A stretch of DNA of 64,000 nucleotides from assembly GCA_973895155.1 (NCBI GenBank), contig OZ316899.1, positions 14,511,934 to 14,575,933 of the forward strand, in the 5' to 3' direction. The notes under the pieces are model-generated. The model saw nothing but the letters and a program-made list of their open reading frames with translations. It searched no databases and was not told the origin of the DNA. The stretch comes from Marsupella aquatica (Eukaryota; Plantae; Marchantiophyta). Positions 1,900 through 56,926 of this stretch are shown piece after piece. Both the position numbers and the translations under genes were made by a program. The number at the start of each line of letters is the position of its first letter. Position 1 is the first letter of the stretch.

Positions 1900-3230
1900 C
1901 TCGCAAACCCCGAGTGGTATCATTGTTCCCTCGAGGGTCCCTTAACCCACTTTAGACCCCGTCCCAATAAATTAAAAACTGAAATCCTTCACAATATAGT
2001 TTTTGGACAAAAGTTTGGTTACAATAGGGCAAAAATTGAAACATTCATGTTGCAGCAAAAAATCATATGTACCACCTAAAACCACGTGTTGCAATTACAA
2101 GGAGACATGTGGTCCAACCTAAACATGACGCGTGTCGCATGAACATATGGCAATAAATTCCCTAACTTTCCTGGACACCTTCTGTGGAATATGTCCCATA
2201 TAAAAAATGCCTATTGTTCTTTAAAGCATCCCAACAATTAAAACGGACCCTTTTGTTCTTCCACCAAACTTTGGAAGTCTTCCGCTGAACCCAATTAAAT
2301 GGCCCTATACTTCATCGCACGTGATGTGGCACTTCCGTGGAAGTGACCCCCCCGAGCTTGTGATTGCCCCATTTGCACATCAGTCGATGCTCCTTTGCAG
2401 AGTTGTGTAGCTTCTAGGACAACAATAACATGTGTACTGGGATGGATAGAGGGAGCTCTTTGTCCAAGAGCTAGGGGCAAGCAATGGCATTGAAAGAAAT
2501 GTATCATGGGTTCCTGTAAGAATTGTGGTATCAACAAGTTGGATTGGTGTACATCTGAGTTAGTCCAATTGACAAGCAATGTATTGAGTGGGAGACATTT
2601 CAGTATTTGGAGTTAGACAAGAAAGCCCAGCAAAAGAGACAGAAGGAAAAAGGACCAGATGAGAGTGCTACAAAAAGGTCAAAACGGTTGAGAATGGTGT
2701 TTAAGAGAACTTCAATGGGTGAATTCAAGAGTCAGGTTTTAAATACAATGACAACATTCATTGTGCATAATTTCAAAGCACGTTACGGTGGCAATCAGAA
2801 CAATTCAAACTTTGTTTGAAAACTTTTTCTAGAGGAACTATAGTGTCATCTATTGATTTCTCTGAAAATTACACGTTCAAAATCCAAAATGAGATACGGA
2901 GTCAACTTTGGGATAATAGACAGGTCACTTTGTTGATTCATGTCACCTATAGACATAGAGAAGATTGTGTGGAATCTTTGGAGGTTGTTGTTGGAAGTAC
3001 GGTTTGGACGACATTGGATGAGGAGGGTGGTCGAGACATTGTTGCAGATTATCATTTTTATATCAATGATGACAATTGTCACGACACTCTCTTCGTCCAA
3101 CATTGCATGGATGCTCATAACCAGTGGATGAGGGAGGAAGGAATTCAGTTTGAGAAACATTGGGTCTGGTCAGATGGGGTTGCTTCACAGTTCAAGGCTT
3201 GCAGACCATTTTATTATGTATCGAGATACT
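1900..3230 (+). repeat. 1.33-kb inverted duplicate of 43656-44985 (P-like left end plus Sola2-like transposase fragment)
   Basis: ORFs 2607-2819 and 2816-3292 are near-identical to 44067-44279 and 43558-44070; flanked by a 20-bp direct repeat with 2 mismatches (1878-1897, 3232-3251). Confidence 0.92.
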
Positions 3231-4629
3231 CCAAGGACATTACTGGGATGGTTGTTAAGGTGCCGTCTACACATCTCAACCTTTCCTTCTGAGGTACTCA
3301 GTTAGGATTAACAACCAATCACTTCAATATCCAGTCGGTACTTGGAGTCACAAATCACAATCACCGTCATCGACAAACTAAATCATGGAAAATTGGTCAA
3401 TGACATTCTTTGCAGGTCGTGCACAAGTAATGTCAAATCCAATAACCACATGCATCAAGAACTTGAGTATGCATAGCCTTCACCATCATGGAATCTATCT
3501 CTATACATTCAATTTTTTTTGACATGAAACTATGTTTTACTACATTGCTCAGAATTCACAACATTCCAAGTTAAGGAAGGGGGAAGAAATCCTTTGTATG
3601 CATTCACTCTTGACAAAAGCCAGAGTTTCTCTCTACAAAGTGAAGCTTGCCATGTTGCAAATCTCCAACACAGGGCTAGATAATTTCCTCACACCAAAAG
3701 TGTCACAAAGTTTGCTACATATAAGTCAGCAAGAACCCAAAGGAAAAGAGACACCGAAGGTACATGGGTATGGCACGCGTGACAGTAAACAGGAAACAGG
3801 TTTACTGGTACCAGGAAATTTTTTCCTGTTACCAGCAAAAAGTTATTGTTACCAGGAAAAATAACCATGTCAAAATATTTTCTAAAAAGTTTCATTTTCC
3901 AAAAAAATCTAAGTTACAACATTTTTTGGCTAGCTTTGGGCGCTAGCAAAAAAAAAATTGAAAAAAAAAATTCCCCCAAAAAAATTTCAAAAAAAAAATT
4001 ACCACTCATTTTCCTTTTATCAGTGTCTGTTTTCTGTTACTGTTTGCTGTTTCCTGTTGTTTATAAATACCCCAAGGTACATGCCCCTTTCAGATCTCAA
4101 AGGTTCTTGAATGAGAATCAAAGGTAACAAAAATATGTTACAAGGGTGCCTAAGATACACTAAAATACTCCTGGAATGTGAAAAAAAAGTCACTAGTGAA
4201 AACTGACACAAAAGTATCGTTTCAGTTTTCACCGGGAAAGTAGAAACAGTGAGTTTGTCCTAATTTTAACTTCTACATTAAAAATCAGAATGAAGTGAAA
4301 CTTTGTCAAGTGATAGATCTACATTCATATTTCATAGTGGGAAAAATTTCAGACTTTTCGGAGGTGTCTAGGTGCCTCAAATAAATTGGAGATAAGTGTT
4401 GTGTGATAGAAATTGCACAACTCCGGAAAACTTTCTAAGTGTCAGGAGTGCCATTGCGCTTTTGCGCTTTGGAGTAATAGCGCCATTGCGCCTTTGCACA
4501 CTCACGCTTTTTACAAAACTAAAAATGCTGATAACTTCTAAACTACATAAGGGTTATCTACTGGTAAAGTTTCAGGCATTCCTGAATACTTCAACAATTT
4601 AACAACAAATCTAATCTAACTCCGAAAAT

Positions 4630-43554: not shown

Positions 43555-43559
43555 TCTTT

Positions 43560-44529
43560 AAGGGGGTGCACAATAATATTGCAACTTATAGCAACACCTT
43601 ATTCCGTGCCATGAAACGTGTAAATACCACTTCATTCGTGCACCAAATCTTTTGTAGTATCTCGATACATAATAAAATGGTCTGCAAGCCTTGAACTGTG
43701 AAGCAACCCCATCTGACCAGACCCAATGTTGCTCAAACTGAATTCCTTCCTCCCTCATCCACTGGTTATGAGCATCCATGCAATGTTGGACGAAGAGAGT
43801 GTCGTGACAATTGTCATCACTGATATAAAAATGATAATCTGCAATAATGTCTCGACCACCCTCCTCATCCAATGCCATCCAAACCGTACTTCCAACAACA
43901 ACCTCCAAAGATTCCACACAATCTTCTCTATGTCTATAGGTGACATGAATCAACAAAGTGACCTGTCTATTATCCCAAAGTTGACTCCGTATCTCATTTT
44001 GGATTTTGAACGTGTAATTTTCAGAGAAATCAATAGATGACACTATAGTTCCTCTAGAAAAAGTTTTCAAACAAAGTTTGAATTGTTCTGATTGCCACTG
44101 TAACGTGCTTTGAAATTATGCACAATGAATGTTGTCATTGTATTTAAAACCTGACTCTTGAATTCACCCATTGAAGTTCTCTTAAACACCATTCTCAACC
44201 GTTTTGACCTTTTTGTAGCACTCTCATCTGGTCCTTTTTCCTTCTCTCTCTTTTGCTGGGCTTTCTTGTCTAACTCCAAATACTGAAATGTCTTCCACTC
44301 AATACATTGCTTGTCAATTGGACTAACTCAGATGTACACCAATCCAACTTGTTGATACCACAATTCTTACAGGAACCCATGATACATTTCTTTCAATGCC
44401 ATTGCTTGCCCCCAGCTGTTGGACAAAGAGCTCCCTCTATCCAGCCCCGGACACATGTTATTGTTGTCCTAGAAGCTACACAACTCTGCAAAGGAGCATC
44501 GACTAATGTGCAAATGGGGCAATCACAAG
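43560..44529 (-). pseudogene. Sola2-like DDD transposase, central part
   Basis: CDCPIC, LCP...C..GSCKNCG, IDFSENY, QNEI, SDD..HD, WSDG..SQFK, W...HG. Assignment to Sola2 is from recalled motifs. Confidence 0.7.
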
Positions 44530-45129
44530 CTTGGGGGGGTCACTTCCACGGAAGTGCCACATCACGTGCGACGAAGTATAGGGCCATTTAATTGGGTTCA
44601 GCGGAAGACTTCCAAAGTTTGGTGGAAGAACAAAAGGGTCCGTTTTAATTGTTGGGATGCTTTAAAGAACAATAGGCATTTTTTATATGGGACATATTCC
44701 ACGGAAGGTGTCCAGGAAAGTTAGGGAATTTATTGCCATATGTTCATGCGACACGCGTCATGTTTAGGTTGGACCACGTGTCTCCTTGTAATTGCAACAC
44801 GTGGTTTAGGTGGTACATATGATTTTTTGCTGCAACATGAATGTTTCAATTTTTGCCCTATTGTAACCAAACTTTTGTCCAAAAACTACATTGTGAAGGA
44901 TTTCAGTTTTTGATTTATTGGGACGGGGTCTAAAGTGGGTTAAGGGACCCTCGGGGGAACAATGATACCACTCGGGGTTTGCGAGGGCCGTCCATGTTTA
45001 GGGTTTAAGATCGAACGGTTAATAATGGCCCGGGTGGCGGCTTTAGAGATGGGGATTGTGGGCCCAAGGATGGGGGAGGACGCGCGAACATTGAGTTTCA
45101 AACTCAATGTTCACTTTCTTTGTGCAAAT

Positions 45130-46160
45130 TGGGAGGGCTGCGTTGCGCTGCCGTGACTCTCTTTGTGACAATCGAGAGGGCTGCGCTGCGCTACCCGTGA
45201 CATTGGAGGATCTTCAAGTTTAATTTCTTCGTGACAATCGGGACTGCGCTGCGCTGCCGTGACTTTGGAGGATCATTTGACTGCGCTGCGCTGCCGCGGC
45301 ATAGGAGAGGACCGAGGAGAGGATCGGGGTAGACTGAGTATTGCTGTTGCCACGAGTTCTGGTGCGAGTTTTTAGAGGAGGTACATTGTCGAGGCCGACT
45401 GTTACTTGGTTTGGATCAAGCTTGATAGAAACTGATCAGGTTTCCACCATAGCTTTTTGCTTGTTTCCCTGTGTACTGCTTCTTCTTATGTTTCTTTCTG
45501 ATATGTGTTAGGAGGACGACAACGCTATAGAGAAAGGTTGGCGGAAAGTAAGTGATGCTCCTAGCTTATGTGGCCCCTTGGAGGTTGCTCCTCTTGCAAA
45601 TGCTGCCGCACATTGATGTCAATTGCTATTTGTTTGCTAGCATTTCCTCTTTGTCTGTGATGTGGTCTTTTTGTTTCATTCAAGAGGAGCTCTAGTTGAC
45701 TGAGGAGGTCGGGAGGACTGTTGTTGGCGCGAGTTCAGAGGCTCTCCATGTTCTTTGTGAGAAATCAAAGGTTGATTGCTGTGCGCTGCTGCAAGCTGGA
45801 GCTGTAGTCAGCTGTGGAGGCCACGAGGACTGCTGCTGCCACGGTTTTAGAGGTCCGTCCATTCTCTTTAAGACAATTGGGAGGACTGCTGTTGCGGCAA
45901 GTTTGGAGGGCGGAAGGACTGTTGCTGTGCAAGTTTGGAGAGTAGGTAGACTGTGGAGGCGTGTGGAGGTCGACTGCTACTTGGTTTCAGACACTACTTT
46001 ACAGAGCTCGGATTGGCAGAAAGAAGGTGATACTCCGAGCTTCTATGTCCCCTTGGAGGTCGCTCCTATTGCAAATGTTGTCGCACATTGATGTTGCTAT
46101 TTTTTGCTAGCATTTCCTCTGTACCTGCGACATGGTCTTTCCTTTCATTGAAGAGGTCCG
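45130..46160 (+). repeat. Short repeats in the leader of the P-like element
   Basis: CTGCGCTGCGCTGCCGTGAC-like motif about 4 times (45135-45300); about 45550-45690 recurs at about 46025-46160. Confidence 0.65.
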
Positions 46161-47193
46161 GAGGGCGATGCTGGCTAGATGTCTGTTGTTGTTTGGTTCT
46201 TTAGTTGCGGGGTTGAGCTGCGTGATATTGCTTGCAGACAGACGCGGACCCAGAAGGGATGCTTGGTGAGGGCGGAAGATAGAAGGAAGTGTTTGATCTG
46301 CCAGGTTAGAATCTATCACTCCTGTGAGTTTGTAATTGGAAGTTTCCATACAAACAGAGTCTATGTTGTCACGGTCACAAGCCTATGTGCTTGCATTGCC
46401 TTGAAAAGAGCCACCCTGAAATCCAGCTTGTTCAGTTATAGAAGCTTCTAAAAAGTTGCGCATCTGATCCCCACTCGCATTGGCAAGATTGTCCATTTAG
46501 GGTGAACTCAGCAAGAGACATCGATGCTTTCTTGGTGAGTACTGCTTGGTTGGTGATCGGTGCTCGATCGTTGTTGTGATCGGTGCTTGGTGCTCGCCAT
46601 CCAAATCAGATCCAATCCAATCCTGCACTGACTGTGCTGTGAAGGTAAGAACATTGCTATTCATATAGCAACTCTTTTTGTGGGTTCCAAAGTGAATGAA
46701 ATTCTGCTAACTATGTTTACTTGCAGCTTGGCTTAGCAGAATGCACATAGTTAGCAAAAAACTGATAGTCTCTCAGGGGGGGTCTACTATCAGAGTTGGA
46801 ACATGTTAGTAGAAAACTGATAGTAGACAGACAGACCCTCGGACTATGAAAGAAAGCTTGTTTGTCAATGTGATAGAGAAGCTGGTTTTTTTACCTGCGC
46901 AGTTTATTTAACTTGGCATTTTTGTTTTTCAAAGCAGTTCTGGTGAGACTGTAAAGAGTGTCACAGTGAGAGAGTTTGCGGTCCTCATTCACTTTCATTG
47001 TACTAAGCTTTTGGTGTATGTTGAGACTATTGATGTTTTATTGAGATTTTTGTTGTGTGTGGGACTTGTGCAGGGGTTTTGTATTGAATTATCATAGAGC
47101 AGCAATTCTAGGCATTTGTTTGGAGGATTCAAGTAAGCTTCATTTTGTTGCAGATTAGCAGATGGTTTCTTATAGTTTATGGTTTAGTGTACC

Positions 47194-49290
47194 ATGAGTC
47201 GTAGACAAGCCATTCCACAAAAAGCCACACCTAGTTCAGTATCAAACCCCATTTTCCAAGGCGTGAATGCCATCTTAGTTCAAAATGGATTTTCCAAAGC
47301 TCATTTTCAAGTCTTTCACAAAAAGCTGATAGAACGTCATGGTGGACAATGTGATATTCTATCCACCAAGACCACTCACATTGTTGCCGATTCATGGAAA
47401 GCAGTCCTGTCCACATGGTCCTAGTCTGATGCGAATCACTTTGTTCAAAATCAGGCAATGAAAGTTGTCTCATTTGAATGGATGTGTGAATCCTTAAAGG
47501 TAGGGGTATGTCTGCAAGAAGGCCCTTTCAACTTAATGTTGACTGAGGTAGAAACCGAGGCTCACAATACCAAGAGGAAACTAGAAATGATTAAACAGGA
47601 TGAGGCAAATGCCCTTTGGCAAACTGTAAACTTGATCATACCAAAACGCAGGTGTATATAGGACTGGTTACGTTTTCCAAGTGTATCCCTGTGTTTGGTG
47701 CAGTTTACATAATAAAGACCTGCTTGTCTGATGCAAATGTTTGCATATAGGAGTCTGTCTATTTTTGGACACTATCTACTCTGTATGTTTGTTTGATACT
47801 TGTATGCATGAAATATAACTTCAACTCCCTTTCTTTCTTGCAGGGATGAATTGGTAGAAGTCGGGAATTGGGGAGGTTGTGTTCAGGCCCTTGCTAAGGT
47901 CAATCCCGATACCTTGTTTGTTGTGGCCTTGTCATTTTGTTGGAGTGGGCACAATCTCTGTGTACTGCACTGAAGATGGTTGTCACACGCAGTGTATTGT
48001 CTGAGTACCATCGACAGAAGGGTGAGCGCTTTCGTGTGAAGATGATCCAATCTGGGATCGTGCCTACAGACTGTGCTGTGACCTGGGGCTATCCATCTGT
48101 GCCTTGCAACCATTACCGGAGGCTAAGTACATCCCCACCAGCCCCAAACAGTATCCGTCTAGTTAAACATACAGATGGGGTGCTGGATGAGGACTGTGTC
48201 TTCTTGGAGGCTTGTCTCCATTGTCACACCCAGACATGTGATCGTTGTAGGGGAGGTGACTCTAACATAGTACAGACTTTTGCACAATACAGGCAAGAAT
48301 GTCATGGGGTGGTTGCCTGGAGTGGAACACCTGTCATTTCATCAATGATTGTGTGTGTGGTGGGACACGTCCAGGTTCTGCCCATGATGGTGATGCACAC
48401 TCAAGTTGTTGACTTCTGATTCTGCATTGCTCACATTGCAGGATGGATCAAAGGAGCCCACAGGGAAGTCATGCCCCTGGTGGTGCCTACTGACTATGAT
48501 TGCTGGTGGACTATCGCTCCTTCTGGTACATCACATGCCTACCCCTCTGCCTGCCCCTAATCTTTGAAGGTAATTTTGCAGATCTTGTTCAGCATGGCAC
48601 ACATTGCTCGTCAGTTGCTGGATCCAAGATTTGGGCATAGGGAGCACCTTCGTATGGATCCCCCTTGCTGTTTTGAATGTGATGAGGGAGGAACTGTTTT
48701 GTTCAGTGATGGCCCTTGTGGTCACCATTTTCATTATGTAGTTGATGGCCACAACCCCGATGAGGAAGATGGCCATGGACCTACATGTCAGCGGATTGTC
48801 ATTTCCAGAGATCATGATTGGGCCGCAGCTTGGCTTTGTGACCTCTGTCAGCAAAACAGAGGAAGATGTTTTGGTTGTGGACTCCTTGGCAGAACCTTGA
48901 GACCCACCACAGACAAGCCCCTTGTGATCCAGTGTTCTCATGATGACTGCTACTCATTTTACCATGTGGGTTGTCTTCGGACACTTCTGCAATTGGGGGA
49001 AATGCCTTTCACCCGCCATCCAGATAACCCTGATGCACATCCCGATGCTCTTATATGCCCACGACATTACTGTGAGGTCTGTAAGGAGTATCGGGAGGGC
49101 ATTTGGGATTTTGTCCAGGCAATGTCGTAGATGCCCTCGTGCATGGTGTCGTGATGAAGGACCAACAACAGACAGGCACTTGAGGAGAAGGGTGAGGGGC
49201 CGAGACACCTGGGACATTGGATAGTGGCGCATGATTTACTATACTCGCCATGTCATCCCAGAGGGTTCTGATATCCCAAGTACCCATGAC
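47194..49290 (+). pseudogene. Cargo gene: N-terminal BRCT plus C-terminal EDM2/NSD-type tandem PHD fingers, intron-containing and disrupted
   Basis: BRCT: IFQGV, IERHGG, TTHIV, VVSFEWMCESL (in-frame TAG 47422-47424). PHD: CFECDEGG...GPCGHHFH, WLCDLC...CFGC, QCSHDDCYSFYHVGC, CPRHYCEVC, then frameshifted CRRCPRAW. Predicted intron 47652-47843. Confidence 0.8.
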
Positions 49291-49373
49291 TAGACCAGCA
49301 TGACTGCTACTAATTCCACCATCTTATAACTTGAACCTTTTTTGTAGTGGACCCATAAGACAACCTAAATTAT

Positions 49374-49548
49374 ACTTAAGTATTTGGTTGAATGCTATGG
49401 ATCGACTTAAGTATTTGGTTGAATGCTATGGATCGACTTAAGTATTTGGTTGAATGCTATGGACTTAAGTATTTCGATGAATGAAATGGACTTAAGTATT
49501 TGGTTGAACGAAGTGGAAGTTTGATGAACTGAAATGGACTTAAGTAAG
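49374..49548. repeat. Minisatellite, unit ACTTAAGTATTTGGTTGAATGCTATGGATCG (31 bp) decaying to ~27 bp
   Basis: Copies start at 49374, 49405, 49436, 49463, 49490; no unique spacers. Confidence 0.9.
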
Positions 49549-49701
49549 TTTCATTGACTACAATAGATTGAGTGTTCAAATGACATAATTGTGAATGGTT
49601 GACTTGAGTCCTGATCTTTTTCCATGTCTGTCCATTGTTGTATGACAGGTTCATGTCCTAATCCCTATCCCTTACTTTCACAGCCTGTATAACTGTCCAT
49701 C

Positions 49702-52700
49702 ATGGCACACCTAGGCATGAGCTCTGTCAGATTGGTAGAAAAGGGTGAGGAGGGAGGAAAGCCTGATACGCCAATCTGTGTCATGTCCTTCAAAGAAGGG
49801 CAGACTCTGGCAGATTTTCGTCTGAAATGCGTTGGTGCAGTAGAGTTTGACTTTGATTTTTGGGATGAGAGGTTGCCTGGTCGAGTCCGACGCTTTTCAG
49901 AGAAGACTGTTGGGGTGATTGAACTTCAAGGGACAATTTACGTGATTGCAGAGTTACCCTCAGTTGCCTTGCTTGCTGAGAGGGTCACTATTGGTTCCTC
50001 TCATTCATCTGCTGCCACTGTGTCCAATGTGGCAGGCAGGACTCCATTGTCTCAAGGACAAACACAAGGGGTGCCAGTATAGGCTATTGTACAGCCTGTC
50101 ACAGGCTCCTTTGAGTCTCACCTCATGTCTGAGGCTGCATCAAAGGCCTGGAATGATGAGTGGTTGAAGCTACAATCCTGGGTGAACCAGAAGGGCTTTG
50201 GTGAGCACAAGTGGAAAGTGCAAACATGGGATGAGGGAGGGGAGTGTCGAGGTCATCTAGAATGCTTAGAGTGTAGGGAGACTTATGGGAATGCAGCCAC
50301 TTCACAGGTGCTCAAGTCCATCGCAAATTACTTTAGCAACTTCAAGACAAAGCACCTGACCAACCCTAAACACAAGGAGAACTGGTGTAAGCGAAGGGGT
50401 TTAGCTGGAGCTTTGGTGACGGCTGCTGACACTATACAACAACCACTGTTTGATCATAGTATGCAAATAGGGGCTGGTGTGGAAATAGTTGGAAAGTTGA
50501 ATGCAGAGGTAGGTGGCATGGTAGAAGTGTTCTCTATCACACCATCTCCCACTGATCCAACATTTGCACAGAGGTCATTCATGTTTAAGGTTAGATGTAC
50601 AGTCTGTGGCAAGCTACAAACTGACATGTGCCCTAAGAAATCCAATTTGGAACACAATTTAAGGCAACACCTTGTCAGTCGGGATCATATGGATGCACTT
50701 GAGAATGTCGTCACCAGTACCCAGACTGCACTGAGGGCAGGGAAGAAGGGGAGACCAAGGAAGCCTGATGCTCGTGATCTATTTCCATCTCAAAATTCTA
50801 TTCTGAATTTCTTTAGAGAGGACAGCTCTGCTGCAGGGAGCAGTTCAGGCAGAGGTGGGTTGTATTCCTCCGTTGAGCCAAGTTTAAGTTTGCTTTGTTG
50901 GGGCCTGTGGGAGTCAGAGGTCAAGTGGACAGGGGATTCTATGGCTGTGAAGGGCATACTTGATGATCAAGAGGGAGGGAATGTCTGGGACTATGACCGT
51001 ACCACCTGTGCTGAGGTTTTCAATGTAACTAGCCAGTCAGTTGTTGGTATACAGGGTTGTTTTAGGCACAAGCAATGTCACAGGGTGTCCATTAATGGAG
51101 GTGGTTTTCAAAACCTCACTTGCACTCTATGTGATTCAATAACACGTGAAGATGATTTTCGTGGCAGGGTGCACAGGGAAGCGGAAGCATTAGTGCAGAG
51201 AGGAGACAGGACTACATAGGGTGGGATGAGGTTGGCATACTTGACCAAAACCGAACTGAGGGAACATGTTGGTAACCTCAACACTCGCTTTAGGAAATAG
51301 CGTTGGCTGTTGGCACAACAGGCTCAGAAAATTTGTGCCTTGAGTGTTAGGCGAAAGAAGCTAGAAGATTTATTAGGAGTAGCCCATGATAGGAAAGATT
51401 TAAGACTGTTTCTGAGAAATATTGTGAATGGACATAGGCGTGGTGCTTTTGGTGGCACGGAAGGGTTGTGGGATTTCTAGACAGATGTAGCTAAGAACTT
51501 GCAGAGAGTTGCTAAGGGTTATCAATACAGTAAGAGAACCAAGGCCTTTTCCCAAACCATGTTCCAGTTTGGAGGTAGACAAGTGGCTCATTGTTTCCAG
51601 GCAAACCTAGGTGGTCCAGGTTTGAAGACCTTGAAATGTGATAGAGCAAAACTACCACCCTTTAGAGCTGGCAGTTGAAAAGAGATATTCCAAGAGGTGT
51701 GCAGAGTACTATGTGCATCAAAGTAGTCACTTGGAATTTCAGGAGATGTACCAGTAATGTTTGCTGAGGATGAAACAAGGATAAAAGAGAGACCCAAGTT
51801 TGTGTTTTTGTCTCTGTAGTAAATTAGCTTGTTCTTTTGAATGTGTTGGATGAGTTTGCACGTCATGAGCTGATGTGTGTTTTGTATTGTGTGTGACAGA
51901 TGGGAAGCTAAATATGACACCCTCATTGGTTTCTGTGGCCCCTTAGAGGAGCACACATGTTCTTTTGGCTTGGAAGTACTGGTTGGAGCAGGTACTGAAG
52001 GGTATGACAAGATTGTAAGTACTTTTGAGCAGTATGCCAAAGGCATGTATGCTAGAGTAATCATTGTCAATCCTCTGCATGCAAAGATGCCTAAATTGGC
52101 ATTGTGTGTTCTACCAACATGTAACAAGTTTAGAGCTCCCTGGGTAAGAGAGCATTGGGTGCAGCTGAAGTCCATGTGGAACACACATTGCAGAGACAGT
52201 GTTGGTCCTTTGTTGGGCCATGCTAGTGATGGTGATGCTCATCGTAGGAAATTGATGATGGAAGATTATACTGTTGTGAATGGTTCCTTTCCTAGGTACA
52301 GTGTAGGATGGGTTGGGTGGCAATACTCAGTGTCCATACTTCCGAATGGAGATCTATATGGTTTTGGAGACCAAGACCCACCTCACAATGGCAAGAAGGC
52401 AATTAACCCATTGGACCGAGTGTCTGCTATGTTAGTTCTTGGTGATCAGCATGCATCTTTGTCATATGTCACATCTGTTTATAACCATTATGCAATTCAT
52501 GAGCATGGTTTGCATTGGGATGATGTGAATAGGATAGATAGACAAAACTGGGCTGGCCCACAATGAATAGCTTCTAGGAGAGTGTAGGCCTGCCTGCAGC
52601 ATATGTATGAGCGACGAGATGTTCGCCATGACAAAAGCTTTGGGACCATGATATACTTGGAGGTTTGTGCAGACTACATGGATATTTTCTTCTCTGTTAA

Positions 52701-54297
52701 GCATGACCTAAGAACCCGTGTTGTCTTGGCATCAAAGGTATCTTGGTTCTTCCGATTGTGGAGGCTATGGTTGAGGTATGGTGATCATTTTGTGATAGGG
52801 AATGCTGGATCTATCACAGAGAAGAACTTGATTTCTGTGCAGGCTTTCCATGATATCAACATGTCTTGTCATTTTGTAGTATTGTTAATCTGTGCCTTTC
52901 GGGACAAGTTCCCATATCTGCAAGTTCCATTTCACTTGTTGGGATCAGATTGTTGTGAGATATTTTTCAGCAAGGTAGGTGGCATGAGTGGCCATGAGAG
53001 AAATTATGACTTTGGATCTCTACTAGACAGTGCAGTGGGACTGAATCGACTAGCTGGATTAGAGTATGGACCAAAGGGATTGAAGATACGTTGATCACAT
53101 GATAAACAGGATCATGTTTGGGCAACTTTACATCCTCTGGATGAAGGAGAACAAGCTCCAAATTTATTTGATTACTTTGCAGTTCAGACTAATGAGCTGG
53201 TTGTTGATGCTCTAAAGGAAGGTTTGCAGGAAGCAAAGGATTTGTTGTGCAAGCTGAACATGTCACCAAGGAGTTCTTTGCCAGCAACCAAAAGACGATG
53301 GTGGGTTCATCCTTGGGAGGTGGAGGCAGAGACTTCACCGGATACAAGTGTCATGAAAGAGGTTGTGTTATGTGATGATGCTAAAGACACAATTGAGCAT
53401 TGAACTACTGTAGGCCCTAGACCTGAGCCCCCAATTGGAGAGTTTCTAGAGTTTGAAGATCTTGAAGAAGATCTCAATCGGATTGATTCATGGGACACTC
53501 TGGACAGTTAGGATTGTATTGAGCCACTAACAGTTGATGATTGTTCGATTGAGGTGGACACTAACCCATTTTGTGAGATGGAGACACTAGGACATGAAGT
53601 AAGGCATGTCTTGGCTGGAGTTCAAGCAGACTTAACTGATGTGCAGACACCCCGGTCAGTAGTGTCTACTATAACTTATGAGGGAAGGACTATCTACAAG
53701 TCCACTCTTGTGAGTCAATTGTGCTGCAATCCTTTCATGTCAAAGGATAGGCTAACTAGGATAGCCCAGAAGACCTATTACACTACTGGTAAGGAGAAGG
53801 AAAATGGTGACTCTGTGACTTGTTTGGTTGACATTGGTACTGATATAGCAGTTTTGTTTGAGTCTGCTATAGAGGTTGGTCCTTCTACCAGATCATCCAA
53901 GTCAAAGAAGAGGAAGGGAATAGATAAAGGGCCTGTTGTTGACGCAACATCTGCAAAGAAGGAATATTGGTTGGGTAGGATTGAGTTTATGATACAGAAG
54001 AATGGCTCCCATTGGGTCAGACGTCGGAAAGCAATAGATCTGTTGGACAGGCCTGTACCTGCAGTTGGACAGAGTGGAAGTGTGTGCCGCTTGCAGTGTA
54101 ATTGGTACAAATCTACTGGTAACAACAAAACTTTGTTCACTTATGACGCAATAGATGGACAATGGATTGATATTGAGATAGTAATTTCAAATGTGAACTT
54201 GACAATGAAGTCTGGGATAGTTGACAGAGTGTATGTACTAGATGCAAGTGACTTGCAAGCTTTGACTGCATACATTCAAAGTGTGAGTAAATTGTGA
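49702..54297 (+). pseudogene. P-like transposase, ~1500 aa, predicted intron 51798-51899, about ten in-frame stops
   Basis: Two C2H2-like fingers, AT-hook KKGRPRK, AEDETRIK, HASDGD, DQDPPHNGKK, DRQN, GSDCCEIFFS (compare P-element DE, DG, DxPHLLK, QDxLExFF); C-terminal YWLGRIEFM...QCNWY. Confidence 0.78.
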
Positions 54298-54936
54298 TAT
54301 ATAATTGACTATTGTTTATTAAAAGTAGTTTGTTGTGTGTGTATGTGATGCATGTGTAGGGTTAGTGGGAGGGAGTAGAGTAGGGGATGGCGGATTGGCA
54401 AATTGAGATTTATGCTCAATCAGGGGTTCAATTCCCCTCCGTCATGTGGACATCATCATGCATGAGTCTGTGAAGGAAGGTAGAGATGTGGACATCATCA
54501 TGCTAGAGTTTACAGTGAAACAAGGTAGAGTACCGATGCCTTGAATAGGCAACCTAAGATGTTCGGTTACCTATTCATAGTATCTGGCACCCACCATGCT
54601 TCACTATTCAAGAGTAAAAACTACAAGTTGTTGGATGACAATGAATGCATTACAAGATATTCAGCTTCATGATGCAAATTCATTGAATGTATTGGAAATG
54701 CGCATCAATTTGCACAATTGGCTCTACACTATTGAGGTACTTTACTTTCCTTAATAGGCATTTTTTAAATCATCATAAAACTTTCCATAAAGTTTTATAG
54801 GGGTAAACAATTCAAAAAATGGCCGCTTTTCAGAAAGTAAGGGAGTGGGGAAAAAAAATTCACTTAAAAGTTAGGGGGTCCAGACCCTAAAACGTCGCAC
54901 GCGATGTAGAGCCCTACATACAGTGACCCCCCCAAG

Positions 54937-56420
54937 ATCACAAGAGCAATGCTTATTGTGTTGATGCTTCCTGAATTTGTTGATTGCCTCCTTCAAGAGG
55001 TCCATTTCAACATGTTGCTTATAGCAACAAACGTTTCTGTCTTTCATAGGACAAATGTAGTAAGGCTTCATATATTGAAAAGACCTCAAGCCTATATGAA
55101 CTCCATTCTTGTCTTTGTTGCAAAACTCCTGGAATTTCAGAAAAAACTCCACCTGAAAAAGATGCAAGCCTTGCCTCAAAACATATTCAATTGATTGTAC
55201 ATAAACAAAGATACAGTAGAGTTCAAATCGCTTACTGATGAACATGAAGCCTTGTACACTATTGTAAGCCCTATTTGAATGTCATTGATAATGACAAATT
55301 AACAAAATCTAACCTGGGTATCCTCCAACCAATGCACCCGATGCTCCTCGTACACCTTTCTACTCAATCGTAGTCTAGCCTTGTCCTTGGGGCAAGGAGA
55401 GATTTGAGTATTTTATTCCCAAAACTTTTCCACATTTCTTTGGACTTCAGCTGAAATTTTGTCGCTTCTCACTTTCCTTTCCCCCACTGGAAACCTTATC
55501 GAATAATTGGAATCTATGGACTTCCTCCTTCTTGAAGCTTTATATGTGATTTGTCATTTTGTACCCAAAGCCCCAGCCACTGAAGTTTGATACCTATTCA
55601 CTACTGTGGCCTCGCTTGCTAGTGTAACTGTCAAGATCTGCTTTGCACCTAGATGGTCTTTTCACTTTGCAGTTCTCACTTTTTGCAAGCAATTCTTTTC
55701 GGCAACTGCAGCAAGTATCGTTACATCTCTTTGATGGGTGCCAAAAACTGCAAGGAGGTAGTTCTTCAAGGAACAATGGAGCATAAACTTAGTGAAAAAT
55801 AGTTTCCTTGGAGACAAATTAATCTGTCCAATCTACTCATGATGGATGTCACCTGAGACTGAACACTCAGTGTTCTCCTATTGGAATTCAATTCATCTTC
55901 TAAATCACCAGCAGACCCACATTGACAAGCCTCTGTGCGTGTATTACCCTTTTTCTTCTAGTATGTTGCTCGCTTCCTTTGAGCATCTCGTGCTCTAAAC
56001 TCTATTGAAGCATAGGATTGACAATTTGCTTGCCTCAAAGCTGAACTCTCCCGCTGCAACTCTGAAGTTTGGCCATGCATGCTCTGGCTGAGAACTTGCC
56101 CATCTAAGGGCCAAAGACGTGCTTCTTGACGCCCTATATGCGACTGCGGAGAGTGTGTCTTCTTTGTATCAATTTGTCACATTGTAATTGTGTAGTATGT
56201 AGGATGCTAGTAGCTTGTGTATTTGCATTCATTATGATGTTGGCAGCCTCTTGGGAAGCCTCCGCACAAATTCTACTCGCTTCATTCTCAGCTGATGAAA
56301 TCATTTGTTGGCATTTGTTTTGTGCATCTTCCAACAACCCCTGTCCAGCCACATTGCTACTATTACCACCATGTGCAATCAATTGTCCATGGGTGATCCA
56401 TTGCTGCCTATTACCATAGG
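54937..56420 (-). pseudogene. Sola2-like transposase, decayed N-terminal part
   Basis: IGLRSFQYMKPYY...RNVCC...H.EMDLL continues into 44521 after removing the P-like element; 5' terminus not identified. Confidence 0.65.
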
Positions 56421-56600: not shown

Positions 56601-56926
56601 CTCAGGGGGGTCACTTCCACAAAAGTGGCACATCACGTGCGACGAAGTATAGGCCCATTTAAATGGTGTGGCGAAAGACTTCCAAAGTTTGGTGGAAGAA
56701 CACATAGGGCATGTTTTATTGACTAATCTACTTTAAAGAACACATAGGCCTATTTAATTGCAAAAAATATTTTCTTAATTTTTTTAGGGGTTTTTTAATA
56801 AAAATGACAAAATTTAAAGAAAGAAAGGGCTTTGCAAAAAAATATTTTTCACTTATAAGTTAGGGGGGTCAAACCTAAAACATTGCACGCAATGTATGGC
56901 CCTCCATATAGTGACCCCCCCCCAAG
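56601..56926 (+). mobile_element. 326-bp non-autonomous relative of the P-like element
   Basis: Left end resembles 44530 onward; right end resembles about 54835-54936 (GTGACCCCCCCCCAAG); no TSD. Confidence 0.82.

Follow-up and report, generated by a model that had tools for sequence, protein, structure and literature searches.

Positions 47194–49290 of the window, that is, of the whole 64,000-nucleotide stretch of Marsupella aquatica DNA analysed here, hold segments that resemble a BRCT domain and a PHD-type Cys/His array, upstream of a transposase gene. The locus raises the question whether a transposon has come to encode a chromatin reader of its own, and whether these segments make up one gene or several. 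To our knowledge, few transposons carry their own chromatin readers, the known cases being chromodomain integrases and the RAG2 PHD finger in the RAG ancestor, and such transposon-borne readers inform on how mobile DNA chooses its targets or evades silencing. In our best explanation, which we consider quite probable, the region forms the accessory-gene portion of a dead transposon of the P superfamily, where three separate genes owned by the transposon lineage lie upstream of the transposase.

Bounds and transposase of the element

The preliminary description had placed the genes within a P-like transposon whose bounds are defined by terminal inverted repeats (TIRs) and a target site duplication (TSD). 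Such bounds are indeed present. Perfect 15-bp TIRs, with the same 8-bp TSD on either side, delimit the element (Table 1), and its terminal motif also occurs at the ends of loci L009 and L008 and of the Riccia locus L003. The TSDs are likewise of 8 bp in the relatives L009 (GTTTTCAT) and L003 (ATTCTTCC), and the TIR lengths range from 15 to 26 bp across these two loci and the window element. As an end motif, CTYGGGGGGGTCACT marks copies of the element. Near the accessory genes, a blastn-short search for TIRs gave chance matches only; the true TIRs sit farther out.

Inside these bounds, the genes lie in the order BRCT, Cys/His-rich, PHD, and then transposase, all on the + strand, and the proposed location of BRCT and PHD upstream of the transposase and co-oriented with it thus stands. 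All four genes are broken by stops or frameshifts in the window copy, which agrees with the earlier remark that this copy is disrupted. L009 is a complete relative, which measures 6.1 kb from TIR to TIR and has a single ORF. No F-box gene was seen in the window element.

Table 1 The transposon and its parts in window coordinates
Feature	Position	Strand	Description and support
Whole P-superfamily DNA transposon	44530–54936	+	Dead autonomous-type copy, 10,407 bp; TIRs + TSD
Left TSD	44522–44529	.	ATCACAAG; identical 8-mer at 54937–54944
5' TIR	44530–44544	+	CTTGGGGGGGTCACT; 100% complementary to 54922–54936
BRCT gene (predicted single BRCT)	47194–47661	+	155 codons + stop, basic KPKRR tail; Pfam BRCT, homologue P0038
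Cys/His-rich protein gene	47976–48412	+	~145 aa, starts MVVTR...; 53% identical to L088:334–768
Very conserved block	48442–48569	+	~128 nt; ~90% nucleotide identity to L002/L088
PHD gene (predicted NSD/EDM2-type triple PHD)	48594–49293	+	~230 codons, ATG at 48594, TAG at 49291–49293; PF22908, homologues P0001, P0002, P0047, P0048
P-like transposase gene	49702–54297	+	Collinear with the 1520-aa ORF of L009
3' TIR	54922–54936	-	Exact reverse complement of 44530–44544
Right TSD	54937–54944	.	ATCACAAG; same 8-mer as the left flank

The transposase gene keeps a single frame throughout and has 15 in-frame stops, four of which fall in a likely short intron near 51740–51895 (for one transposase alignment, the stops were written as X). 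At the N-terminus, the protein carries Cx2C...H fingers together with a GRPRK AT-hook, and the transposase of the relatives has a BAH-like C-terminal domain. The motifs run in the order DE.., SDGD, D..H..K...N, and then E..F..GG, an order like that of the P element. No Pfam family, those of P/THAP9 included, was matched at E<=0.1–1 by the window pieces, 20 homologues, and eight intact relatives of 816–1517 aa. Neither did the intact full-length relatives show a THAP domain in Pfam, nor the transposase a match in sequence and profile searches of the PDB. The ORF pieces of the window were searched separately and not as joined or spliced protein models.

At the structural level, we have modelled the relative L018:1827–4685 with AF2 in place of the window's broken gene, to whose pieces it is 45–46% identical. 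With a 51-row alignment, the model has a pLDDT of 74.5, and the core is above 90; a first model (P0016, 21 sequences) was discarded at a pLDDT of 51. In VIA-align, the L018 model aligns with the Drosophila P element transposase (6pe2_A) at a Z of 26.1 over 386 residues (rmsd 4.2), whereas Transib reaches 11.5, RAG1 ~10, and Hermes 8.7. This alignment covers residues 135–566 of the 6pe2 chain, and the GTP-binding insertion domain should fall inside. Foldseek also matches the family core to the P element transposase (E 3.5e-10, TM 0.66 on the target). Since the core of a relative matches the P element transposase well above the next fold, the term P-like is supported, in line with the 8-bp TSD, and the model supports an RNase-H-like DDE core of P element transposase architecture for the family transposase.

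Genes upstream of the transposase

The span at 47194–49290 had been described as one gene that carries both BRCT and PHD, with the single polypeptide given as a prediction. We have found three separate ORFs in it. The BRCT ORF is in one frame and is interrupted by a nonsense TAG at 47422–47424, where the homologues have a Trp. Its first piece scores 17.7 bits with Pfam BRCT, just under the cut-off of 21.3, and the intact 146-aa homologue P0038, which is 58% identical, spans positions 4–78 of the 78 in the profile at 20.0 bits against the same cut-off. The window and P0038 ORFs stop at the same position. In addition, phmmer ties the BRCT pieces and P0038 to P0039–41 (E 1e-10 to 2e-9), which are clear BRCT proteins with 33–56 bits; the earlier identification of a BRCT domain probably holds, at a sub-cut-off score. 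A whole-library HMMER search with the window BRCT gave five matches, namely P0038, three tandem-BRCT proteins, and one generic protein. Phosphopeptide binding is predicted less well by a single BRCT than by a tandem pair.

For the PHD gene, the ORF at 48564–49130 matches PHD_NSD (PF22908) at 35.4 bits over a cut-off of 23.9, which confirms the view that the Cys/His array is of the NSD/EDM2-type PHD. The same profile gives 32.7 bits for P0001 and 26.2 bits for P0002, two of the four intact homologues listed in Table 1. In the intact homologues, PHD-1st_NSD, PHD_NSD, and PHDvar_NSD are arranged in this order, with the first (17.9–20.4 bits) and the last (13.4 bits) below their own cut-offs; the PHD homologue of a CACTA transposon clears the PHDvar_NSD cut-off at 31.2 bits. 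A PDB search with the PHD gave a weak match to NSD3 PHD5-C5HCH, and no relative emerged when metagenomes were scanned with the PHD alignment. The window copy has a 4-nt insertion near 49116–49119, a TAG at 49222–49224, and changed zinc ligands (Cys to Ser, Cys to Tyr). Judged by its profile matches, the transposon PHD falls under the NSD/EDM2 type of Pfam but lacks the architecture of EDM2.

Between these two lies a gene for a Cys/His-rich protein, which has no Pfam or PDB match. A word search with the 160-aa ORF at 47937–48419 was also without match, and its conservation is shown by comparison with the L088 DNA. In the window copy, a 1-nt deletion near 48292 has caused a frameshift, and only in the proposed frames are the dN/dS values 0.38 (47976–48290) and 0.22 (48294–48416) obtained. 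Between this gene and the PHD ATG, the very conserved block stands out from the surrounding coding DNA, of which the identity to L002/L088 is ~72–75%, and it is bordered by acceptor-like and donor-like sites.

One may suppose that BRCT, the Cys-rich part, and PHD are exons of one spliced BRCT-PHD protein, for the ORFs are closely packed on the same strand, acceptor-like sites at 47842/47843 and 48441/48442 are conserved in a related copy, and a donor-like site is present at 48569/48570, 24 nt before the PHD ATG. We regard this as quite unlikely. The BRCT stop codon is the same in both lineages and no donor exists there in the related copy L088, and on these grounds we have discarded a predicted intron at 47652–47842 that would connect BRCT with the following exon. 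A 4-nt indel lies downstream of the acceptor and ahead of the Cys-rich ATG, and this stretch is therefore non-coding. Further downstream, the Cys/His-rich ORF keeps both its ATG and its TGA in L088, the PHD ATG ('MA..') is kept in three lineages with stops directly upstream in all frames, and a CACTA cassette has PHD and BRCT as separate genes in the reverse order. Overall, starts and stops are the same, or nearly so, wherever a boundary is covered by a diverged copy, and a third gene intervenes, so that the idea of one polypeptide is not supported; the span is read here as holding three predicted genes, and not one BRCT+PHD gene.

We have also rejected 48442–48560 as a C-terminal exon of the upstream gene, as the codon-wise substitutions favour a different frame and the Cys/His-rich ORF stops at 48412. 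Neither the ~128-nt block nor the donor-like site ahead of the PHD ATG agrees with a simple model of one mRNA per ORF. Since conserved acceptor-like sites precede the Cys/His-rich, PHD, and transposase genes, each of these ORFs may come from its own spliced mRNA.

Conservation and relatives of the accessory genes

The three genes might be host-gene fragments taken up once, by transduplication of the Pack-MULE type, with no role for the element. Gene fragments are often carried by plant DNA transposons, and the window copy is rich in stops and frameshifts. On the other hand, other samples yield an element of ~72% identity in which these three ORFs recur in unchanged order and those of BRCT and PHD are intact, and the start and/or stop of each ORF matches its position in the window, or nearly so. 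The contig of P0038 follows the order of the window, with BRCT, an 82-aa ORF, a 247-aa PHD_NSD ORF, and a cut ORF. Across 47617–50221, the DNA of L088 and L002 is ~72–75% identical to the window, and the identity falls in the spacers and returns at each ORF; the copies compared all derive from a single series of sequencing runs and, L001 (PHD gene only) apart, may represent a single species. The dN/dS of the PHD is 0.23 (window vs L002), and the PHD and Cys/His-rich genes evolve under purifying selection (dN/dS 0.2–0.4). Moreover, the proteins contain whole domains rather than pieces of them. One-off captures absent from other copies had been named as what would speak against the original proposal, and neutral capture is already largely refuted by these observations; we give it hardly any credence. 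The three accessory genes belong to the transposon lineage.

Within the P-like family, 80 loci were recovered from metagenomes with the transposase as query, and neither PHD nor BRCT was found by tblastn and profile HMM in 83 other P-like loci (573 kb scanned in all). In the transposase tree, for which two stop-free pieces of the window were concatenated, the window transposase groups among cassette-less elements (supports 99/98, 97/95, and 99/99). Because the 83 other loci have neither gene, one P-like sublineage appears to have gained BRCT and PHD.

By sequence similarity, the two genes come closest to the tandem-BRCT and PHD genes that a CACTA (En/Spm) transposon carries; its contig (L087) has the order PHD, tandem BRCT, and Transposase_21 + DUF4218. 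PHD P0001 is 30% identical to the L087 PHD (E 5e-19) and BRCT P0038 is 32% identical to P0040 (E 1e-15), and the single BRCT is collinear with BRCT1 of the tandem pair, including the TTHIVA..W.AV...WSW motif. No homologue of the Cys/His-rich ORF was found in L087. As in the window element, homologous PHD and BRCT genes lie just upstream of the CACTA transposase and are co-oriented with it. The differences are that the transposase is Transposase_21 there, while the window family has the P-type fold and an 8-bp TSD; that PHD precedes BRCT there, while BRCT, Cys-rich, and PHD follow each other here; and that two BRCTs are found there, compared with one BRCT plus a basic tail here. What is new in the window element is its P-type carrier, the altered order of the genes, and a BRCT that is single.

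With the closest relatives of BRCT and PHD being CACTA-borne, the three genes could also be a fragment of a CACTA cassette that landed in a P-like element and serves, or served, CACTA elements. However, the window BRCT and PHD are only 30–37% identical to the CACTA genes, below the 58–67% to the P-like-linked copies, the gene order is different, and the single BRCT has a new tail. The placement of the accessory genes directly upstream of the N-terminus of the P-like transposase recurs in the diverged copy, and selection has lasted since the split of this copy and the window. Besides, no Pfam match to Transposase_21 or DUF4218 was found inside the window element. Such nested debris is thus a rather improbable source, and we keep to genes owned by the P-like lineage.

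Based on the above analyses, the module may have been acquired by one P-like sublineage, most simply from a CACTA element, with the direction of transfer read from the distribution only. Since BRCT and PHD are common to CACTA and P-type elements, they suggest a chromatin toolkit passed from one transposon family to another, and the occurrence of homologous, rearranged PHD/BRCT genes before two unrelated transposases, together with purifying selection, argues for a functional module, not passenger DNA. More specifically, and with considerable doubt, we put forward that a portable module of BRCT plus PHD reader has been exchanged between CACTA and P elements in bryophytes and kept by selection in each for reading histone marks and engaging break repair, as a counterpart of the RAG2 PHD with RAG1, and possibly for anti-silencing. 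In such an exchange, the Cys-rich protein accompanies the module in the P-like lineage.

Possible roles and comparison with known systems

In the proposed mechanism, the PHD protein would read marks on the histone H3 tail, and the BRCT protein would act as a phospho-protein or repair adaptor. Both would cooperate in trans with the transposase, the relatives of which have the BAH-like tail, either in choosing or tolerating the chromatin at donor or target sites, or in recruiting repair factors to the excision break. Histone reading, repair, anti-silencing, H3K9me2 reading, and heterochromatin targeting are functions that we can only infer.

The same structure might do another job, with the module serving as a repressor or copy-number regulator, e.g., by competing for the transposase or the ends like the truncated repressors of the P element. 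P and En/Spm elements are regulated by small accessory or truncated proteins, and the direction of the effect is fixed by nothing here. However, the PHD and BRCT folds are typical of chromatin/repair adaptors, the family transposase has a BAH-like tail, and none of the three proteins showed a domain for binding DNA ends. A regulator is unlikely on these grounds, and we prefer partners that would assist the transposase. Should a defined histone mark turn out to be bound by the PHD protein, chromatin sensing by cut-and-paste elements, a long-standing question, would become testable, and the CACTA and P-type carriers constitute a natural replicate for testing the role of the module.

Among known systems, the Drosophila P element and THAP9 share with this family the P-type catalytic fold, the 8-bp TSD, and short TIRs. 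The bryophyte family differs in that it has no THAP but Cx2C...H fingers, an AT-hook, and the BAH-like C-terminal domain, and the window element, in its bryophyte host and without a Pfam P/THAP9 match, adds three accessory genes. A large P-superfamily clade is documented in this way in bryophytes and environmental samples, which is without THAP, invisible to Pfam, and provided with a BAH-like transposase tail.

EDM2 is an H3K9me2-binding protein with 2.5 atypical PHD fingers (PMC7529245). The intact homologues of the transposon PHD show, with the two outer modules below their cut-offs, the Pfam series of PHD-1st_NSD, PHD_NSD, and PHDvar_NSD of the EDM2/NSD family, but the transposon proteins, at 226–247 aa, consist of the PHD module alone, and the ELP methyltransferase-like domain, the PGR domain, and the proline-rich tail of EDM2 are missing from them.

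Chromatin-reading or anti-silencing proteins of their own are also encoded by the chromoviruses (Ty3/gypsy), where a chromodomain is fused to the integrase, and by VANDAL21, whose VANC is an anti-silencing factor. Their carriers, however, are retrotransposons or Mutator elements, the reader is integrase-fused or an unrelated VANC, and no PHD/BRCT is involved. In the RAG system, the RAG1 recombinase is stimulated by the PHD finger of RAG2, a reader of H3K4me3. RAG1 resembles Transib rather than the P element (Z ~10 against the family model), and RAG2 is a kelch protein with one canonical PHD finger and without a BRCT partner. Still, both systems combine a DDE-type cut-and-paste enzyme with a PHD reader encoded separately by an adjoining gene, and RAG1/RAG2 is the closest functional analogy for the way in which a PHD partner could guide a transposase.

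Bounds and surroundings of the element

The window is eukaryotic DNA of land-plant type, and the best named relatives found come from the liverwort Riccia sorocarpa. Since an exact pair of terminal inverted repeats (TIRs) is flanked on both sides by the target-site duplication (TSD) ATCACAAG, the element is 10,407 bp long. Two relatives are bounded by this terminal motif, again with 8-bp duplications, i.e., the metagenome contig L009 (26-bp TIR, TSD GTTTTCAT, 6.1 kb, one ORF only, 1520 aa) and the Riccia locus L003 (TSD ATTCTTCC). The bounds by TIR and TSD in the preliminary description are thus real, and the copy is disrupted as described there, with breaks in the BRCT, Cys-rich, PHD and transposase genes.

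Features of the transposon and its surroundings
Feature	Position	Strand	Remarks
5' TIR CTTGGGGGGGTCACT	44530-44544	+	exact reverse complement at 54922-54936
TSD ATCACAAG	flanks both element ends		8 bp
Subterminal short repeats CTGCGCTGCGCTGCCGTGAC (about four copies) and two ~470-bp tandem units	45139-45290, 45560-46140		between 5' TIR and BRCT gene
BRCT-like domain frame	47194-47661	+	single frame
BRCT break	47422-47424		TGG>TAG at the homologues' Trp position
Third accessory gene, Cys/His-rich, ~145 aa	47976-48412	+	between BRCT and PHD; conserved ATG 47976, conserved TGA 48410-48412
Cys-rich break	near 48292		1-nt deletion in window copy
Conserved block, ~128 nt	48442-48569		~90% identity to related element, vs ~72-75% in neighbouring coding DNA
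PHD breaks			window copy: 4-nt insertion, one TAG, two zinc ligands lost
Tandem ~31-bp repeats CGACTTAAGTATTTGGTTGAATGCTATGGAT	49385-49560		PHD-transposase spacer; missing in related element
Transposase-like frame	49702-54297	+	long single frame
Transposase breaks	49702-54297		15 in-frame stops, of which a short intron probably holds four; no frameshift vs L009 over 4.6 kb
Interrupted gene of another repeat	43558-44279, 54871-55245	-	P-like element sits within; ORFs share IDFSENY...DDNCHD
Inverted duplication	1900-3234 vs 43652-44985		1.3 kb, 98% identity, 15 transitions, 7 transversions; holds second 5' junction (5' TIR, 455 bp interior, 880 bp flank incl. TSD)
MITE-like deletion derivative of the family	56601-56926		~326 bp; both subterminal regions common with the 10.4-kb element

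In the 2.7 kb from the 5' TIR to the BRCT gene, a coding signal was not found. The ORFs of the interrupted repeat have no Pfam match, and no clean TSD was found at the deletion derivative. The inverted duplication is a segmental duplication younger than the insertion.

Transposase and its P-type fold

Pfam matches neither the window pieces of the transposase, nor 20 homologues, nor eight intact relatives (816-1517 aa); neither a THAP domain nor sequence membership of Pfam P/THAP9 was found, and a PDB sequence search gave no match. A word search returned 34 relatives, Riccia proteins among them, and a metagenome scan 80 loci. For an intact relative, we have modelled the core (L018:1827-4685) with AlphaFold from a 51-row alignment (pLDDT 74.5, core >90). 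The best Foldseek match of this model is the Drosophila P element transposase (6pe2/6p5a, E 3.5e-10, TM 0.66 on target), followed by RAG1 (E 3.8e-4); VIA-align also ranks 6pe2 first (Z 26.1, 386 residues, rmsd 4.2), ahead of Transib (Z 11.5), RAG1 (~10) and Hermes (8.7). Because of this fold match in the modelled relative and the 8-bp TSD, the reading of the family as P-like, proposed from the sequence beforehand, is supported.

The C-terminal domain of the modelled transposase (L018:4227-4595, model residues 801-923; window equivalent within 53554-54297) resembles a BAH domain. The match is modest but consistent (EBS, Z 7.6, 86 residues, rmsd 3.3; ZMET2, Z 7.2, 81 residues, rmsd 2.6; DIM2 and MTA1 weaker), and according to the model the transposase itself may carry a chromatin-reader module.

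CGA>TGA or CAG>TAG changes account for several of the transposase stops, and the BRCT stop is TGG>TAG; C>T transitions (methyl-cytosine deamination), not indels, look to have driven the decay. In two relatives, L003 (Riccia sorocarpa CM100795.1, 7139-18952) and L008 (308-9064), 3-5 kb of extra DNA lies 3' of the transposase; its ORFs have no Pfam match and may be other, unrelated cargo.

Three accessory genes

The PHD ORF (48564-49130) scores 35.4 bits with Pfam PHD_NSD (PF22908), where the cut-off is 23.9. A composite PHD of the EDM2/NSD kind had been claimed here; HMMER upholds this for the middle domain of the order PHD-1st_NSD, PHD_NSD, PHDvar_NSD, while the two flanking ones stay below their cut-offs. 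By sequence, the module belongs to the NSD/EDM2 type of Pfam. EDM2 itself binds H3K9me2 and contains 2.5 atypical PHD fingers (PMC7529245); the transposon protein differs in being stand-alone, without EDM2's other parts. A word search found the homologues P0001 (247 aa, intact), P0002 (226 aa, intact) and P0003, and two more intact variants, P0047 and P0048, are cluster members.

The first BRCT piece scores 17.7 bits with Pfam BRCT, under the cut-off of 21.3, and a HMMER search of the whole library with it yields five proteins in total. The best is the intact P0038 (146 aa, 58% identity), on a 3.2-kb contig where the BRCT gene (113-553), an 82-aa ORF, a 247-aa PHD_NSD protein (1403-2146) and a cut ORF follow one another in the order of the window; P0039-41 are tandem-BRCT proteins of 264-294 aa.

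The Cys/His-rich protein has 53% identity between the window lineage and that of L002 and L088, two contigs with related accessory genes, and matches nothing in Pfam or PDB. Its L088 copy has 10 Cys and 8 His, with the motifs CAV.WGYPS and C.H.HTQ.CDRCRGGDS.

The DNA of L002 and L088 aligns to 47617-50221 at ~72-75% identity, and this bears on whether BRCT and PHD form one polypeptide, as had been predicted. The BRCT ORF stops at the same codon in the window and L002/L088 lineages, without a conserved splice donor at that point; an unalignable spacer follows, and conservation resumes at the acceptor-like CTTTCTTT..GCAG/G. A 4-nt indel precedes the conserved ATG of the Cys-rich gene, so the stretch before it is non-coding. 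Three lineages have the start ATG of the PHD ORF ("MA..") in common, and the ends of this ORF differ by no more than two codons; in L002 the ORF 3' of PHD continues unbroken into the transposase N-terminus. Given these conserved starts and stops and the intervening Cys-rich ORF, a single polypeptide is unlikely, and the comparison favours three genes.

For PHD, window against L002 gives dN 0.21, dS 0.95 and dN/dS 0.23; against L001, a further contig with a related PHD gene, synonymous sites are saturated (pN 0.27). For Cys-rich, window against L088, dN/dS is 0.38 (47976-48290) and 0.22 (48294-48416), values valid in the proposed frames only, as other frames give >0.8 and contain stops. That the P0038 ORF is intact at 58% identity likewise speaks for selection on the BRCT gene.

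Acceptor-like sites are conserved in a related copy before Cys-rich (47842/47843), PHD (48441/48442) and the transposase (49649/49650), which points to a shared leader with alternative splicing. This model does not account for the block at 48442-48569, which is so highly conserved and is followed by a donor-like site. An acceptor-like site lies on its other side, and none of its frames shows a convincing coding signal.

Origin and possible role of the module

On the 13.4-kb contig L087, the tandem-BRCT protein P0040 has a PHD gene (224 aa) on one side and a CACTA transposase (Transposase_21/DUF4218) on the other. Identity between this CACTA PHD and the P-like-linked one is 30% (E 5e-19), with the cysteine scaffold alike throughout, and P0038 is 32% identical to BRCT2 of P0040 over the whole domain (E 1e-15); in a multiple alignment, the single BRCT falls on BRCT1, with a common TTHIVA..W.AV...WSW signature. 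Neither tblastn nor profile HMMs found a PHD or BRCT relative in 83 other P-like loci (573 kb of fetched DNA in all), among them L009, a complete element, and three loci from Riccia, each with 8-10 kb of DNA upstream. In a maximum-likelihood tree of 18 stop-free rows, excluding loci with stops or partial coverage, the window transposase nests within cassette-less lineages: its sister is Riccia L004, then L010, then L008/L009 (supports 99/98, 97/95, 99/99). The simplest reading of these sequences is that the module was gained in one P-like sublineage, and the simplest source, with the direction inferred, is capture from a CACTA element.

A literature search found no paper combining CACTA, BRCT and PHD, and nothing on bryophyte P elements or on EDM2-like or BRCT genes carried by transposons. 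Transposon-encoded chromatin readers are already known as a kind; new here are the P-type carrier, the three-gene layout and the evidence of a module common to two superfamilies.

The PHD reader and BRCT adaptor would act in trans with the transposase, whose relatives have the BAH-like tail, and cutting and integration would thereby be coupled to chromatin state. Alternatively, they might recruit repair factors to the break left by excision. The nearest analogy is RAG2, whose PHD finger assists RAG1.
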